Assembly (NCBI GenBank): GCA_016748015.1
Contig: JAAOMT010000009.1
Span: 1,174,954-1,238,953 of the forward strand
Direction: 5' to 3'
Length of the DNA stretch: 64,000 bases
Origin: Geosiphon pyriformis uo1
Lineage: Eukaryota > Fungi > Glomeromycota
Shown here: in pieces, positions 1,959-55,991 of the stretch
Position numbering within the stretch: position 1 is the stretch's first letter
Layout: each line of letters starts with the position of its first letter
Notes under the pieces: model-generated
What the model saw: the letters and a program-made list of their open reading frames with translations, nothing else
Told to the model about the DNA's origin: nothing
The model's database searches: none
Program-made: the position numbers and the translations under genes

Positions 1959-2326
1959 ATGGCAAGATATTTTGTCTTTCGAAAGCCAGTATTCCTCACG
2001 TTACTTCTCGTATTATGCGATTGGTTCACCAACGCTGCATTAATTCGAAAACGTAATGAAATTTGTTTGAACCAATGCAATGATCCATTCAACAATCCGT
2101 GCGGCTTCCCCGTAATGCCATGTGTCGAAAGTGAATCACTTCAAACGCAATCCACCCAACAAGAGGATTGTCTCGAAGATCACCGACTCTCGGCGTGCGA
2201 CAATAATCAATATCAGCAACAATCATGTGATAAAAAAGAAAACGATTACACTGTGATTACAAAGCGAGATCAGTTACTGAGTAAAGAAAGGCTAAGGAAA
2301 CGATATACAAACTATGAAATAGTACC

Positions 2327-2358
<32 letters not shown>

Positions 2359-3683
2359 GTGGTGGTGACGATGAGAATATAATCATGATTATGAATGAAG
2401 AGGAAAATGTGCCCGTCATGATGGAAAATTATATGATACCGAGTGAATGTATTATGCCACCAATCCCAAACATTGGAAATTTCAAAACCGCCCAAGATAC
2501 GAATTATCAAGAATGTTGTTGTAATAGTCATGCCCTACAATCGTGCTCAGATAAGCAACATCAAGCCGAAGAAGCTTGTGGTGGACAAGGTTCTTGTGCC
2601 CTCGCATTAAAACGATATCTGAGTCGACGTTGTGATCCTTATATTGGAACTCCTCTTTCCTGTGGTTGTGACATTTGTCCCTTACCGATCATTCCTCCCG
2701 TAGAAACTTATAAATGTTGTAGTAACAAAGATTATCAACAATGTGGTGCCGAAAATGAATCTCTGGAATCTTGTTGCAATGATCAACATGGAATTAATTC
2801 GTGCAGCGAACAACAAGGTGCTAGCACTTACATTATGAAACGTGAATTTATCCCAACTAATGGTGATCAGTGTGGTTTTCCTTGTTGTCCAAATCAAGCA
2901 GTTGAAAGTCTGAATTCTTGCTGTCAAGATGAATATTCAGAATTCGGTTGTAACAATTCGGCTTACGAGTCATGTGATAATAAACAAAATCAACTATGTT
3001 GTTGTGATCAAAATGAGGAAGCTTATACTCGAGTTGCTCGAAAGAAGAAACGATCCCGGTCATTTATACCTTCAGGACCCTTGAAAAGAAGACACCTTAA
3101 ACGCCAATGTACATACACCATTTCAATGCTAGATGTTGGCGATTGCAAAACAGCGGGACAAAAAGAATACGCGTGTAGCAACTGTAAATCAGGTGAAACA
3201 CAAGCCTGTTGTAATCGACAAGCTGAGGAGCAAAAGACTGGTGGTTGTGGAGGTTCTTTTGATCTTGTGATGAAACGAAATCTGGGTTTCCCTTTTCAAA
3301 ATAATCATCGTATCAACAAACTCTTACGTCGACGACCCCTTCAAATAAATATGGCGATGGAAAGAGAAAGAGAAGGACAAGTAGCTGATTGCGATAATGG
3401 ATCGACTTGTGAATCGTTTGATAATCAGGATCAAGTTTGTTCGAATGATTTATATCAAGTCGAAAAGGCCGCGCTTGGTACGAATATGATGCGAAAACGG
3501 TCACCATTAAATCTGGCTATGGCGATGGAAGGACAAGAAAGACAGTGTGAAGCTTGTTGTGATGATACTCAACATGAGGAATGTTGCTGCCAGCAAAACG
3601 AGCTAGAAAGCTGCGAATGTTGTGAAGATAGCTTTGCTGCATTGGATGCCAAAAATCCTAGAATATGGATGGAAAAATGTTAG
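1959..3683 (+). CDS. Secreted Cys/Gln/Asn-rich Kex2-processed repeat protein (KEP-like precursor), 574 aa, 7 modules
   Basis: Intronless ORF; hydrophobic N-terminal signal (VFLTLLLVLCDWFTNA); >10 KR/RR sites; about 55 Cys; five ungapped 48-aa repeats ending in KR/RK plus two ~55-aa repeats; TATAAAT at ~1851. Confidence 0.85.
2328..2357 (+). repeat. (GAT)10 microsatellite encoding poly-Asp in the KEP-like protein
   Basis: Visible GAT run in frame. Confidence 0.9.
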
Positions 3684-5078
3684 TGTGTATGAGAAAGAGA
3701 TTAATGTTATTTGGAATGTGATAAATATTGTATTTTAGAATTTCATATTATAATATCAAGTCATGTAATTTATTTAATTGAACCCGAATCAGAAAAAGAA
3801 GGAATAGTGTACCTGATATTAGACTTTCCTTCATATAATTAATGCCATTGGATTAATATTTTTCATTCCCTGATGCGTATTTTATGATGGTTGGTTTACA
3901 TTGCTTGCCATAAATAACGAGAATTAAAAAACAAGGCCCTAAAAAAACACTGTAAAATGAAAAAAATTCCACTTGGTGATTGTGGTATTCACAATCCTCC
4001 AATTTTAGCAAGATTAAGTAATGTTTCTCTTTTTACAACATATAAATATGTTTTATAACTCAAAAGAAAAAAAAAATTGAAGCTATTTCTTTATTTTAAC
4101 CATACAATAATTTTTGCCTTCTTAAAACCAAAATGTTACCAATTGAAAATTAGATTTTAAAAACCATTAAAAAAATATTTTAATTAATTATTATTAGCCA
4201 ATTGTATTAAATAATTTTTTTAAATACTTAAATTTTGAAATATGTATTTTAAAAATATAACTTTTTAATTTCTCAATTATTTTTAATAAAATAATTATTT
4301 CCTCTTTTGTTTGAATATTATTATTAAATTCTAAATTTTAATAAACCCCCAAATTAATAAATAATTTTTGGTTAAAATTAATATTTAATAATTCAAAATA
4401 AATAGTTTGAGAAATTACTGTAAAAATCATAAATATTTTAAATATTGACATCTATTATTTTTAATTGTGTTGATTAGAGTTCTAAAAAATGAATCATCAA
4501 AAAAGAGGTTTTTAAAATTTTTTACAAATGAAATGAGCCAAAAAAATTCTTTTTCAAAATTTTTCAGGGCAGCAACGAAAAAGATTTAAATAACATATTG
4601 GAATTTGCAAGACCAACAAAATTTACATAAAGAATATAGGCTTACAGAAAAAAATAGCATATAAAATGAAAATATTATATTATCAAATTATAATGAATGG
4701 TCAATTTTACGTTGAAAGAATGCTAGGAGATTCCAGCAAGATAATAATCCGAAGCACAAATGTAAAATTGCTCGACCATTTATTGCTATTGAATGAGGAG
4801 TGGCCGGATCCACCCTAATTGGCTTTTGTGAGATGGTGATCGCGAATAGTTGAAATGTAATAATCATTTTTCTAAATCCGGCTTAGAATTGTACTAGCGT
4901 ACACTCACAGAAAATTATTAGCATACACAATTAAACAATTATGTCTTAATTTGGTAAATGAAATGTCGAAAATAATTAGTTCATAGATTATTTGCATATA
5001 GACACTAAATCTACATACTTGTAAAGCTGGAGCTCAAATAATAAAGTTCAGAGAATTTATTGCCAAAAAACGATTCTC

Positions 5079-6994: not shown

Positions 6995-8581
6995 TCATTT
7001 ATTACACGTTACTTTTCATTCATTCATTCATTCATAGAGAATTTTATTAATCTTATTTAATCAGTTCTTAATAAGTATTTAGACGCCTTCGGATAGAAAA
7101 TTCGGCTTATGGTTTAGATTTTTTTTAAAACATAGACCCAAGATTTTAGATACATTAGAGTAACTAATTTATTTAAACGAGTTTATTATTACAATTATGA
7201 TTGTTATGGTTATTATATCTTTAATTTAATGTTTATTGAACAAATATGGTAAAAAATATGTTAAAACTTAAAGTTTTGGTGATTTGAGGTTTAAATTCAT
7301 TATACGTATTAGAAAATAAATTTTAATTTGTAATAAAACTTATAATTTCACAATTAAAATTATTAAATTTTTTGTCTCATTTTATAAAGTGTGATAATTG
7401 CAATATAAAATATATTGTTTTTACATTTTTAAAAATCTCAAAAATTTTAATGATAGATAAATTAATTGCTAAAATATTTTTACCTTTAATATTTAATCTT
7501 TTACTTGGTAAGTTAACAACAAAATCACCAATTCGTAAAGATTATTTATGAACTTATTGATACAAATTGGTTTCCATTTCTAGCTCAAGATAAAAACTAT
7601 GATTTTTCAATTGTTTAGTTACAAAGTTGTAATTTGAATCATTTAAATATCTAATGTACAAGGCTTTTTATCTGAAAACAGACAAAATAAACTTTTCCAA
7701 GAGCTAACAATCATCAAAAAAGCATTCACATCTTGAACTTTTGGCCATGTAATTCATTGGTATTTTTAAATTACATGAAAGTTGTCCAACAATATGAGTT
7801 GATACTCAATGTCAGACTTATCTTCAACTGCCTAATTGTCTATAACATGTGAAGTTCTTAGATCTTTTGATTAATTCAGCTTAAAATACTATATTATGTA
7901 AATCTTTTCATTAAACATCATCTATGCTACTAGGTCAATAAACCTCATAAATTCTAACCACTAAGACACAACATGTTTCAACTTACTTTTTGAGTGTTAA
8001 TATTTTCTTACAAAAATACACTCAAGCTGTTGATGGGCCAGTTTGTTTTGTTTGTCTGTTTCTGGATTAATTGTTCAGCTTATTTTTCTTTAATTAAAAT
8101 TAACTAACTGCTGCTTGGTTTTCAAATATTTACTTTAAAAAATCTATACCAATATTTTGTAAAAGAGCATTTTTATAAGAGACTCTACAATTATATTTGA
8201 GTTTATTCTTTACATTAAGTGGATACTCTAGCAATTTTTTAAAGTATAAAATATTACTCTGTGTATACAAAACTTTTATAATAATACTATTTACTTTTTT
8301 AATGTTTTAATCTCAAGTTAAGATTTGAATTAAAACCAATTAAAACAACCAAATTATTGATTGCTGTTTCTCTTACAAAATATCAAACCAAATAGTATTG
8401 TCAAGCTATTTGCTTAGATTACAAGACTTATATGTTAAATACACAAATAAAATACCAATATTATAACTTGTTATTGTAAGTTTAACTAAAATCAATAAAT
8501 GTTTATAATAACTATTATGGTTTTACTGGATTTAATTAAAAACATCTGTAAACAAACTAACCAGCAAAATTAACAAGACAG

Positions 8582-23238: not shown

Positions 23239-25938
23239 GTGGTGACAAAAACCCCTAATCTTACTGTTCTTGAATTCTGCCGTGCTATTTACACACAAAA
23301 TCAAAGTAATCTTGGATTACCAGAAGGGTGTTGTCCAGCAGAATCTGCTCTCACTTATTATATCAACGCCAGAATAAATTATCATATAGGAAAGGAAGAA
23401 GAACCACACGATGCAAAACTTGGATTGTATAGAGAATTATCACAATACACTACAAAAGAAGTAGCAGTAATAGCCGTAACTATTGTCAAAATCTATCGAG
23501 AAATTGAGCAATATGCCAATGAAAATTTTCCAATATCCACAGGAAACACTAGGGAACGCGCCAACAAAACCAAAAAAAATTTAGAAACTAATCAGGAAAA
23601 TAACCAGCAAAAACTAGAAACACCAGCTCAAACGCCAAAGAAAACTGTCACTCAATCAATAAAGAAACAACGTATTTATTCACTAGAAGATAAATCATAC
23701 CATTTTTCACCAGAAAATAAGATACAAATTCCATTAGGAGCTGCATCATCATCAACATCAACTCCACAAACGCCAAAAACTCCTAGTTATATTGATAAAA
23801 TTAAACAACGTAACTGGGGAGACATACCAATTACAGGAGGATATTCATCACTATTCCAAAACCCTCTTTTTCAGCCAAAATTTAGAACGGGGTTTGAAAA
23901 CCGTGAAGAGGAGTCTGAATCAGAATCCAAAAAAGAGACCAGCGAAAAAACAATCACAAGACCAGTCACTGAAACAAGCAGCCAGTCCAGAAACCAAGAA
24001 ACTCGTGATCAAGAGGAAGAACCGGATATAAGGGAAGCCACCTTTAGGAACGCTCAAGGAAATATCATCCCACCTCCTCTTAGACCAATAAACCCACCAG
24101 CAGAAAATGGCAACGAAATGACCACACCATACATTGCAAGACTAACAGATTTCTCAGGAGAGGAAGAAGAAACGGACGTGCACACATGGCTCAGAGAAGC
24201 ACAAAAAGCCATCCAGGCAAATAACTGGAACGACCAAAGAGCAATTCAAACATTACCTTTCTTCCTAAAAGGCACAGCTGACTCGTGGTATCAAAGCCTG
24301 GAAACAAAACCCATGAGCTTCGCCGAATTTAAAAATGCACTCCTGGAGTATTTTAGCGACCCAAACGCCGTAATCCAACTACAGAACAAATTCAATACTA
24401 TCAAGCAAAATACCGGTGAAACTGTCACCCAATACCTTGCTCGATTCAATCGAATTTGCCATCAGATTGAAGCGATTGAACAAGGATACTACACTGATCC
24501 TCAGGTTTTAAATCAGTTTATTAGAGGATTAAAAAGCAGCATTTTAGGAAGAGTATGCCCTGCCCACCCTAATTCCTTACCAGAAGCCATTACGCTCGCC
24601 AGAGCCCTTGAATCGGCTGAAAAAGAAGCTAACCATAGTCAAATGGTTAACATGGTAATGGAGGAAAATAAGACAGAAACATTAGAGAAAAGAGTAACGC
24701 AATTAGGGGAGGAACTCTCTAAGAAAATAGAAAGTTACCTCATCCCGGATCTGAGAAAAAATACATACCAACCACTCCAAAGACGCAGCCAGGAAGTCAG
24801 CAACAGTCGAAATAATCGCCTGTCGCGCCAGGAATTCAGAACAGAAACACGCGCCTGCCATTTTTGCAAACGCGTAGGACATTTGATTAGTCAATGTCGA
24901 ACGCGAATGATGCAGGAAGCACGTGAAAATAATTACTACACGCCACCCCAAATGCCCAGAAACCAGTACATGCCAATACCACGCCAATATCCCACCACGT
25001 ATCAAAATCAAGGAGCTTACCAGCAACAGCCCATGATAGCCAACCCGAATTGGCGTCCCGAGGCCCGAAATCAGCCCATGTGGAACCAGAACGCGTTGGT
25101 CCAGAGGAATCCAAACCGCGCTGGAACCAATCAGCAAACCAATCCAAACTACCAAAATTATCAACAAACTTACCTTAATATACCGGAAAACCTGATCATC
25201 GGAAACAATAACAGTAGAAACATAAACAGAACCAAGAATTCCTCCAAATTGAGCCAGACAATACCACCAGCAGTTGCCACCGAAGATAGCAGTCTCACAG
25301 CTATTTTTCCTTTTGAATTAGAGGAAAACGAGGCTATGTTCAGTGGAGTAGCATTGGACAAAAAATGCCCAATCACTGCTATGTATACGGAAGCCACTAT
25401 AAACAATACCCCAATCAAACTTATCTTAGACAGTGGATCCACTGGAAGCATCGTAACGCTTCAACTAGTAAACCAACTGGGTTTCAAAGTTGATCGTGCT
25501 GCGACGTCCCAAATCATAACAGCTGATGGAAGTACAAAGCTGCCTTATGGCGAAATCAACTCATTCCCTTTCAAAATTAACGGCATAGTAATACCTACAA
25601 AAGTATTAGTAATGGACGCTACACAATATCAAGCATTAGTAGGGAATGACTGGCTAACAAAAGCCAACGCCACCCTAGACTGGACCACCCAAGAGCTTCT
25701 GATCAATTATAATGGCCACCAGGCCAAAATTCCAGCCACCTGTGGCCACTTCCAAAAACCCAGCGCCAACCAAAGACCTACCTTCGAATTTGAGGAAAAT
25801 CCAGCACTACCAGCCATCAAAACCTATCAGCTCTCTTGGGCTGATGACCAAAGAACAGGACTACCAGCCGTACCAATGTGGACCAGCGAAGAAAGATCTG
25901 AATGGAACCAGGTAAGTTCACAAAGAAACCACCAGTGA
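23239..25938 (+). CDS. gag: Gypsy Gag (capsid, CCHC knuckle) plus aspartic protease; the stop at the end is probably a mutated sense codon
   Basis: FSGEEE..WL, LKGTADSWY, QFIRGL, CHFCKRVGHLISQC, LILDSGS, ALVGNDWL. Confidence 0.92.
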   Translation: MVTKTPNLTVLEFCRAIYTQNQSNLGLPEGCCPAESALTYYINARINYHIGKEEEPHDAKLGLYRELSQYTTKEVAVIAVTIVKIYREIEQYANENFPISTGNTRERANKTKKNLETNQENNQQKLETPAQTPKKTVTQSIKKQRIYSLEDKSYHFSPENKIQIPLGAASSSTSTPQTPKTPSYIDKIKQRNWGDIPITGGYSSLFQNPLFQPKFRTGFENREEESESESKKETSEKTITRPVTETSSQSRNQETRDQEEEPDIREATFRNAQGNIIPPPLRPINPPAENGNEMTTPYIARLTDFSGEEEETDVHTWLREAQKAIQANNWNDQRAIQTLPFFLKGTADSWYQSLETKPMSFAEFKNALLEYFSDPNAVIQLQNKFNTIKQNTGETVTQYLARFNRICHQIEAIEQGYYTDPQVLNQFIRGLKSSILGRVCPAHPNSLPEAITLARALESAEKEANHSQMVNMVMEENKTETLEKRVTQLGEELSKKIESYLIPDLRKNTYQPLQRRSQEVSNSRNNRLSRQEFRTETRACHFCKRVGHLISQCRTRMMQEARENNYYTPPQMPRNQYMPIPRQYPTTYQNQGAYQQQPMIANPNWRPEARNQPMWNQNALVQRNPNRAGTNQQTNPNYQNYQQTYLNIPENLIIGNNNSRNINRTKNSSKLSQTIPPAVATEDSSLTAIFPFELEENEAMFSGVALDKKCPITAMYTEATINNTPIKLILDSGSTGSIVTLQLVNQLGFKVDRAATSQIITADGSTKLPYGEINSFPFKINGIVIPTKVLVMDATQYQALVGNDWLTKANATLDWTTQELLINYNGHQAKIPATCGHFQKPSANQRPTFEFEENPALPAIKTYQLSWADDQRTGLPAVPMWTSEERSEWNQVSSQRNHQ

Positions 25939-53965: not shown

Positions 53966-55856
53966 TTTTTTTATTATTATTATTAAAATTTAACAAGTGA
54001 AGTCCAAACACCATCTAGTGCTATACATTATACAAATGATTTAAACTAGACGTGAATCATGCCTTTGCTACACGTGACCAGATACTCAGACTAATCAGAA
54101 CAACACTACGCACTTATATAAACAGAAGCCATGTCACCAACACCTGCATAAAACAAATAATGCTTACAATACCCAAAACTGATGCCAAGTGCATCAGCAA
54201 CACCCAACAACCTAATCATCCCAGCCAAAAGCTGCATAGAAAAACCAGAAACAGTGATAGAAATGGAACCATCACGTGGAATCAGCTTATTCTTCTCCAT
54301 AATGGCCTGGTGTTTCGCATAAACCAGCCAGATACTATCACAAAATGCAAAACAAAACTCACGTACAAAATTCACAACATTAACTACTGCCACCTTAGGA
54401 TCCTTGTAAATAGAAACAGACTCATGATACCAATCGCCAAAAACAAAGCCCTTACACAGAGCTGTACTAACAGTCACATCTGAAATGCAAGTCAACAACA
54501 ACTGTGATATGCATGAAGAAGAGTGAGACAAACCAGAATGCACCTCCCAGGCAGCTGCATAAGTGTTCAACAAACCAGCATAATTATCAGCGTCAGAAGA
54601 GTAAGAAAAGACATGGTTTGAGACTTTAACCTCACCACAGAACAAACAAACTACACTGAGATAACCCCTATCATATAGATGCTTTTGCACAGCAACAGGA
54701 AGGCAATGATGAAAGGCTTTCATAAAATATGTATGAAAGCCAGCTGTCCAAATACTAGTAAAACCAGTTGCCATGTGAGAATCCAGGTGTCACACCAAAG
54801 AAAACCTCAACCAGTCAATATCAGCATGCAAACAATCTGGAACCACCCAGAAACCAGAACCAACCTCTCAATGCGCACGATAGATTGACCTAAATATGTC
54901 ACAAACAAAATACCTCAAATTACCAGAAACCGTATCAACACCAGCCTTCAAAAACCTCTCACTGACCAAGTAGGGCAGATGCCAGGCAGAAAGGGCAGTA
55001 TTCTTTGCAAGTGCATCAGTCTGCTTGCTGCCTGAAACGCCCGAATGGCCCTTAACTTTAATCCAATTAACATCCAAATTTTTGTGATGAATGACATTGG
55101 CGATGTGACGATGCTTAATCCAACAACAATTTCTGAAATTAGGGCCAACTGATAAAAATTCCAACCTGCAAGCATCTAAAGCCGCTTGGCTGTCCAAGAA
55201 CAAGTCAACTGAATAAAAAGAAGGAACACATTCAAGAACTAAAACAATGGCCTGCAACTCTGCCAAAGTAGAAAAAACCAAACCAGAAACTCTCACACCC
55301 AAACCCGAATCAATGTCCTCAAAGAAAACTGCAGCACCAGCCAACATGTCAACAGTGCCCAAGTTACTTAGAAATCCATCTGTGTACACAAAGAGATAGG
55401 CGGCACCAACATTTAACAGATCATTACAAATAACACCAAAACCAAAAGACTGATGAATGTCAGAAGAGCCACAAACACTCTCATGAGGAGAACGACCAAA
55501 AGAAAAAGCAATACTACCAAGAAAACGAACAGAGAGATCAAACCAAAAGGGGACTGGGCCATAGGGGTCCAGTCTTTTCCAATGCTTGAAAGTCTTCCAA
55601 TCAAAAACAACACTATTATGGTCACAAAGCTGTTCTACAAAAGCAATACCATAATGCCTAAGGGTAAAGACACATTTGAAGAAAATTGCCTCACTGAGAA
55701 CTAGAGACATAGGAGTACCACTCCGAAAACAAAAAGCACTGGCCAGAGAGCCACTCAAAGATAAATCACACCCAGAAAAAATACAAACCACAACTGCCAA
55801 AAAGTTGTTTGAAAAACTGACTCTAACACAAACAGAAAACAACAAAAAGTGATAAG
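53966..55856 (-). mobile_element. 5'-truncated younger LINE (RNase H plus C-terminal Zn finger)
   Basis: VYTDG, AELQAI, LDSQAA, KVKGHSG, CLFCGEV; (TAA)n/polyA tail; 10-bp TSD GCAAAAAGTT at 53956-53965 and 55857-55866. Confidence 0.92.
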
Positions 55857-55991
55857 GCAAAAAGTTATTAAAAAAAATTAGATTATAACTAATAAAATTT
55901 ATGATAAATTTGTGTAAATTTGTATAAAAAAAGAATAAATATAACTTTTTTTTTAACTTTTTTTTTAATTTTTTTGGCTGAAAATTTGGCT

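Follow-up and report, generated by a model that had tools for sequence, protein, structure and literature searches.

Kex2-cut precursors are among the main sources of pheromones, toxins, wall peptides and RiPPs in fungi. The Glomeromycotina are not transformable, and few of their secreted molecules are understood. From Ece1 of Candida albicans, the candidalysin precursor, a set of non-identical peptides is released at KR sites; these peptides are short, contain little Cys and include a helical membrane toxin. The KP6 preprotoxin of Ustilago maydis and animal progranulin give rise to distinct Cys-rich peptides of approximately 55-80 aa from one precursor, with the linkers removed; KP6 consists of two chains with fixed disulfides, and granulin has a strict 12-Cys pattern. 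The peptides of U. maydis Rep1 are mutually similar, are not Cys-rich and form amyloid-like fibrils.

Rep1 is a secreted precursor from which, according to two articles, Kex2 releases about eleven wall-retained peptides of tens of residues (PMC8528282, PMC5293756). In K2PP effectors, which carry a Kex2-processed pro-domain, one N-terminal pro-domain is lost and one mature domain is kept (Outram 2021, PMC8528282). Kex2 was described as preferring Arg at P1, a basic residue (Lys or Arg) at P2 and an aliphatic residue such as Leu at P4 (PMC8528282). For the fungal Kex2-processed repeat proteins (KEPs), definition and detection both depend on short motifs that are identical or nearly so (Le Marquer 2019, PMC6339444; Umemura 2020, PMC7329392). 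Repeats were grouped at >65% identity by Umemura (PMC7329392), and the pipeline of Le Marquer required repeats to make up at least 15% of the protein (PMC6339444). Kex2-type precursors were found to be numerous in Glomeromycotina, with [KR]R repeat proteins in Rhizophagus and Gigaspora (PMC6339444, PMC5293756). Both KEP surveys (PMC6339444, PMC7329392) are older than the Geosiphon genome.

The gene studied here belongs to Geosiphon pyriformis, whose assembly comprises 128 Mb in 792 contigs. It lies in a stretch of 64,000 nucleotides, called the window below, which corresponds to positions 1174954-1238953 of contig C701 (JAAOMT010000009.1); coordinates without a contig name are those of the window, on the + strand unless marked otherwise. 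The gene is a single intronless ORF at 1959-3683 (+), encoding 574 aa plus a stop codon and starting at the first ATG of the open frame. The ORF call and its translation were matched by a predicted protein in a public collection, the 574-aa product of which is identical and is encoded on a contig of 2.36 Mb. The GC content of the ORF is 38-41% versus 15-33% in its flanks. A divergent gene approximately 1.1 kb away begins with the first exon of a glycogen synthase (428-850, - strand; PF05693, E 2e-48), and no neighbour pointing to a biosynthetic cluster around the precursor gene was found. In the single listed sequencing run of the species, next to none of the words of the locus were present and zero reads could be placed, which bears on expression neither way. 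Farther along the window, an ORF of a Ty3-type retrotransposon (gag, capsid and aspartyl protease domains) occupies 23239-25938 (+), a separate RNase H ORF occupies 54868-55860 (-), and transposon remains are plentiful. The intergenic stretches 4000-4750 and 7000-7750 have a GC content of just 15-21% versus 28-41% around them.

The protein begins with a signal-peptide-like segment (aa 1-27, 1959-2039) composed of a basic n-region, the core VFLTLLLVL and T-N-A ahead of the likely cut. This segment contains the best 11-residue hydropathy window of the whole protein, and it is overlapped by a helix predicted by AF2 at aa 9-40 with pLDDT 75-84. The signal peptide call is a heuristic one, based on hydrophobicity, the -3/-1 rule and the AF2 helix; by the hydropathy heuristic, a signal-like N-terminal segment was present in six of the six family members described below, as the preliminary description had proposed for this protein. 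The segment is followed by a putative mini pro-peptide, LIRKR (aa 28-32, 2040-2054), which was recognised from its site context, a dibasic end with Ile at P4. The remainder consists of seven Cys-rich acidic modules, 55-104 aa in length with 3-10 Cys and a net charge of -2 to -22, and five Cys-free basic spacers of 5-19 aa.

Modules M0, M1, M2 and M4 were delimited by the repeat HMM and composition. M0 (aa 33-103, 2055-2267) has 7 Cys, a net charge of -9 and the end ITKR, and it contains the first repeat core, aa 56-103. A spacer of aa 104-115 (2268-2303), delimited by composition and site context and ending LRKR, leads to M1 (aa 116-219, 2304-2615), in which an acidic poly-Asp leader precedes a Cys-rich core; M1 has 7 Cys, a net charge of -22 and the end ALKR. 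The poly-Asp run is encoded by a (GAT)n microsatellite of 16 copies (2327-2374), detected by a DNA repeat search. The spacer YLSRR (aa 220-224, 2616-2630; composition) separates M1 from M2 (aa 225-295, 2631-2843), which consists of a Pro/Cys-rich leader and a core, has 10 Cys and ends IMKR; modules of this 'long' type are common to the Geosiphon paralogue, Ambispora and Acaulospora. M3 (aa 296-365, 2844-3053) also has 10 Cys and ends VARKKKR, and in a comparison of modules its best match was the last module of the Geosiphon paralogue. Between M3 and M4 lies a double spacer (aa 366-382, 3054-3104; composition, site context) with two dibasic sites, LKRR and HLKR. M4 (aa 383-440, 3105-3278) has 7 Cys and ends VMKR, and it is followed by a spacer of aa 441-459 (3279-3335; composition) ending LLRRR. 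M5 (aa 460-514, 3336-3500) is degenerate, with 3 Cys, the end MMRKR and a weak match (independent E 0.03). The C-terminal module, M6 (aa 515-574, 3501-3680; HMM, hydropathy), has 10 Cys and the SPL start seen in the 'short' modules of the relatives; it does not have a hydrophobic tail and therefore carries no GPI signal.

It had been proposed that five cores (aa 56-103, 172-219, 248-295, 315-362 and 393-440) align without gaps as 48-mers of low overall identity. This alignment was reproduced: all five begin with V or I, four have Y12, [S/A]-C-x-[N/D]-x-Q occupies positions 24-29 in every one, and their ends are, in order, ITKR, ALKR, IMKR, VARK and VMKR. Pairwise identity is low, at 9-16 of 48 residues (19-33%). 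The sum-of-pairs BLOSUM62 score of the five was 530, compared with -301 +/- 48 for within-segment shuffles, -412 +/- 68 for random windows from the same protein, and -77 +/- 29 (maximum -14) for the five highest-scoring windows chosen greedily in shuffled proteins. HMM matches of the repeat units ranged from 5e-27 to 2e-30. The 48-mers were therefore real, but neither the size nor the number of units given earlier was complete. According to both the greedy search and the HMM, the unit reaches 8 aa further upstream into the Pro-rich leader, giving 56 aa; with a sixth copy at aa 515-574 and the degenerate module at aa 460-514, there are seven modules in all. At the DNA level, repetition of the modules is limited to scraps of 17-20 nt, and the sole true tandem repeat in the gene is the (GAT)16 tract. 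Because the modules are unrecognisable as repeats in the DNA, their duplications must be old.

A profile built from eight repeat units, akin to the search suggested in the preliminary description, was run against 1.84 billion representative proteins and matched five of them at E<=0.001: the query, a Geosiphon paralogue, a protein of Ambispora gerdemannii with 311 aa and four units (4e-25), and two proteins of Acaulospora morrowiae (E about 3e-4). A 355-aa protein of Ambispora leptoticha was picked up in addition when the family alignment was used for a word search. The same search with the query alone returned only the query itself, and with the paralogue it returned only the NCBI entry of the paralogue. 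When two profiles were run over the whole Geosiphon genome, just two loci were found; the other fungi were searched as annotated proteins. Three weak genome matches in which only the poly-Asp region aligned were dropped as compositional. A metagenome scan with the main protein gave 32 pattern matches and no relatives.

No described family accounted for these proteins. Pfam was searched with the main protein (E up to 10), four relatives (E up to 1) and the paralogue (E up to 0.01) and gave no match; no PDB chain was matched by the module profile at E up to 10, and neither the main protein nor the Ambispora relative had a hit in the ESM Atlas feature search. On this sequence evidence, the proteins form a small undescribed family, so far limited to three genera of Glomeromycotina (Geosiphon, Ambispora and Acaulospora); as known to date, this distribution is patchy, covering Archaeosporales plus Acaulospora. 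The earlier suggestion of an undescribed system therefore stands insofar as no described family matches; it does not stand as a lone system, since there is one paralogue and there are relatives in Ambispora and Acaulospora.

The paralogue lies on the same contig, 1.1 Mb from the precursor gene (C701:58871-59878, +), and is annotated at NCBI as a 'hypothetical protein'. The deposited model, G9A89_016887 (223 aa), begins at Met113 of a 335-aa ORF, the start of which is signal-like and aligns with the N-termini of the Ambispora orthologues; because of this signal-like start, the model is probably 5'-truncated. Each of the three Ambispora modules finds its best match in the module at the corresponding position of the paralogue, and a flanking gene is weakly collinear. 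From this module-by-module match and the weak collinearity, the ancestral copy appears to be the paralogue, and the gene in the window, with seven modules versus two to four in the relatives, seems to be an expansion on the Geosiphon side. By the hydropathy heuristic, all six proteins have one N-terminal hydrophobic segment, no second one and no hydrophobic C-terminal tail.

The two Ambispora genes (L015:5001-5936 and L018:5001-6068) encode proteins with 82% identity over aligned columns (72% by BLASTP), which differ mainly in a 14-aa Pro/Cys-rich tandem repeat, present in 2 versus 5 copies, within the leader that precedes the third module. The dN/dS of the pair was 0.18 (NG86, LWL85) to 0.28 (YN00); judged by these rates, the Ambispora orthologues are working genes under purifying selection. 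A comparable tandem repeat, of the APCGSP type, was observed near the C-terminus of the Acaulospora protein P0005. Retrotransposon ORFs are abundant in the wider window, as might be expected if the ORF in the window were a chance ORF, a pseudogene or derived from a transposon. This is scarcely credible, however: 574 codons are open in AT-rich DNA and have raised GC, Pfam found no transposon domain in the ORF, the same architecture is found in homologues of three other species, and the Ambispora pair is under purifying selection.

In the preliminary description, the modules were bounded by KR or RR. The mature part contains 12 [KR]R runs versus 2.9 +/- 1.5 expected, a number reached in none of 5000 shuffles, and all 12 are located at module or spacer borders, with none within a module. 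Among the 58 Lys and Arg residues, 34 sit in runs versus 11.4 +/- 4.1 expected, a threefold clustering. One of I, L, V, M or F was found within two residues before each of the 12 runs. P4 is I, L, V, A or M at 10 of the 12 sites, the exceptions being KKKR and HLKR, so that the site context matches the published Kex2 preference (PMC8528282) at those 10 sites. Across the six proteins of the family, every [KR]R is at a module or spacer end and none is inside a Cys-rich module; a hydrophobic residue precedes 26 of 27 dibasic runs (binomial 2.6e-12, the sites being non-independent through shared descent). The spacers, with a dibasic site on either side, comprise 58 residues without any Cys (P 0.002) in a protein with about 9.6-9.9% Cys.

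The genome also encodes a kexin. Adjoining exons with Peptidase_S8 and P_proprotein domain profile matches were found at C608:603788-605677 (-), at approximately 604.5 kb, and this was the only P-domain locus found in the Geosiphon genome. The Peptidase_S8 and P-domain open segments are presumably apart owing to introns.

Conservation of the sites can be read in two ways. In the Ambispora pair, three of three dibasic sites are kept, together with the hydrophobic residue before them, as expected from the earlier reading as a Kex2-type precursor. Sites can also be lost, since the Geosiphon paralogue lacks one Ambispora site and Acaulospora 178 has EER in place of one site of Acaulospora 328. Because the terminal hydrophobic-x-K-R is conserved together with the module, conservation cannot separate a cut site from a structural part. 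It is conceivable that the protein is an uncleaved, beads-on-a-string secreted Cys-rich repeat protein of the wall or matrix, in which hydrophobic-x-K-R belongs to the folded unit or serves as a charge feature. The distance from the conserved Cys to KR is strictly fixed in 18 modules of three genera, as for part of a domain, and relatives lose sites yet keep the module. However, six of the 12 sites lie beyond the repeat unit, at spacer ends, where five of the six have an aliphatic P4, and they are therefore not mere copies inherited along with the module. The threefold clustering of Lys and Arg, the five-residue LIRKR directly after the signal peptide, and Cys-free basic spacers with a site at either end, an arrangement known from polyproteins, also argue against an uncleaved protein, which is considered unlikely.

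Judged by site context and conservation, processing of the precursor is plausible, and the earlier reading as a Kex2-type peptide precursor is partly supported. On every point at which that reading could have failed by computation (signal, site conservation and family match), the precursor held up. The gene rather probably encodes a secretory polyprotein, with predicted cleavage by kexin into seven non-identical acidic Cys-rich peptides. In such a pathway, the signal peptide would be removed and the chain oxidised in the ER, and kexin would cut behind every dibasic site in the late Golgi. The basic tails would be trimmed off by a carboxypeptidase, and some of the new [S/A/T]-P-L N-termini may shed an X-Pro dipeptide through a Ste13-type peptidase. 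A fixed set of seven peptides would then be secreted and the spacers discarded.

The Cys residues of the predicted peptides do not form a constant pattern. In 18 aligned modules from three genera, only about four Cys columns recur, one of them nearly invariant. Odd Cys counts per predicted peptide are frequent (7, 7, 7 and 3 in the precursor of the window). Between the two Ambispora species, 5 of 36 Cys columns were changed, and Cys conservation was 86% versus a non-Cys identity of 82%. Cys is therefore conserved about as well as other residues, so most Cys are not under special constraint. In knotted toxins and hormones, Cys are the most conserved residues. The fluid and often odd Cys counts are easier to reconcile with cross-linking or cation binding than with a fixed knot, as far as sequence can tell. 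The idea that an even total masks the odd counts per peptide, with inter-peptide disulfides restoring parity, was rejected as a rule: the mature totals of the six proteins are 54, 40, 32, 39, 13 and 30, and those of 39 and 13 belong to two relatives. Hydrophobin-like and granulin-like Cys patterns were also rejected because there were no profile matches and the composition is hydrophilic. In Pfam searches with the six members, no family profile of known Cys-rich domains (hydrophobin, granulin, CFEM, metallothionein and others) was matched. AF2 yielded no confident fold for the protein (pLDDT 39) or for a module; for M2 with a 7-row alignment, pLDDT was 45 and just two short helices appeared, around the conserved Y...C and A-L-x-x-C.

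Such a composition could also belong to a secreted, metallothionein-like precursor that sequesters metal, its Cys clusters (CC, CCC, CxC) and Asp/Glu runs chelating Cu, Zn, Cd or Ca extracellularly. The high Cys content, ten CC/CCC clusters, the odd and variable Cys numbers, the CGC, CEC and PCG motifs in the leaders and the poly-Asp run would agree with this. However, Pfam returned no metallothionein match at the thresholds given above, the fungal metallothioneins known are cytosolic proteins that have no signal peptide, and thiols are normally oxidised on passage through the ER; metal sequestration is thus distinctly improbable as the main explanation. For the predicted peptides of the kexin-cleaved polyprotein, an extracellular role in the wall or matrix, through thiol or disulfide cross-links and cation binding rather than as knotted toxins or hormones, is the most likely of the roles considered, but may be put forward only tentatively and with some doubt. 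It is suggested by composition, because the peptides are acidic, the Pro/Cys-rich leaders variable, the copy number low and the Cys fluid, and by the purifying selection. Its low copy number and its conservation set the family apart from fast-evolving effectors.

No fungus other than Geosiphon is known to have cyanobacteria inside its cells. By analogy with the NCR peptides of legumes and KP6 of Ustilago, the precursor might supply a processed battery of symbiont-directed or antimicrobial peptides to the compartment holding Nostoc or to the soil. The predicted peptides would be secreted, Cys-rich, 50-70 aa long and all derived from one precursor, the family is lineage-restricted, and there are seven modules here versus two to four in the relatives from plant-symbiotic genera. 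However, those relatives occur in plant symbionts without cyanobacteria, the predicted peptides are without exception acidic (net -2 to -22), in contrast to the mostly cationic membrane-active peptides, and the Cys positions are fluid. The Ambispora dN/dS, near 0.2, is also not that of diversifying effector or defence peptides, and such a battery appears very unlikely. A narrower form of the idea would be that Geosiphon, by expanding a Glomeromycotina-specific Cys-rich precursor from two to four modules to seven, sends peptides via the secretory pathway into the Nostoc compartment and thereby controls its endosymbiont; this is a long shot, to be given still less credence. If it were true, the peptides of the Nostoc compartment would be a fungal, polyprotein-encoded counterpart of the legume NCR peptides that tame symbionts.

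If the predicted cleavage is correct, precursors can bear old, strongly diverged and individually conserved Cys-rich modules. Since published surveys seek near-identical repeats, precursors with diverged modules are missed by them. For the biology of the Glomeromycotina, the family would provide a small set of candidate extracellular peptides that is conserved and lineage-restricted and has exact predicted ends.

When compared with KEPs, the Geosiphon precursor has a signal-like N-terminus and no membrane anchor, both by heuristic, and repeated units each ending with KR or RR. KEP repeats are separated by KR, RR or KK, and here all modules end in [KR]R; the five 48-mers alone, 240 of 574 aa, make up 42% of the protein, in excess of the 15% minimum of the Le Marquer pipeline. 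X-Pro follows some of the sites, which recalls the Ste13 signatures reported for Rhizophagus KEPs. The repeats are not near-identical, however: identity between the units is 19-33%, they measure 48-56 aa and are rich in Cys, each is conserved individually across genera, and no described KEP shows sequence homology to them. Because the published operational definition demands identical or near-identical repeats, the precursor is not a KEP under that definition.

The ustiloxin-type RiPP precursors have short cores, unlike the Geosiphon modules of 55-104 aa. A search of the Geosiphon genome for UstYa (DUF3328, PF11807) found nothing, and the control genomes were silent as well. The precursor has no known sequence similarity to Rep1, with which it shares the plan of one secreted precursor with many Kex2-type peptide units. 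Ece1 is likewise a single precursor with KR sites and non-identical peptides; the Geosiphon modules are longer and Cys-rich and are not known to be homologous to it. With KP6 and progranulin, the likeness is in biogenesis only, and there was no Granulin Pfam match at E up to 10. A short pro-segment with a Kex2 motif right after the signal peptide, LIRKR in Geosiphon, recalls the K2PP effectors, from which the precursor differs in having twelve sites and seven modules. In its architecture, the precursor resembles the fungal Kex2-processed precursors, namely, KEPs, Rep1, Ece1 and KP6.
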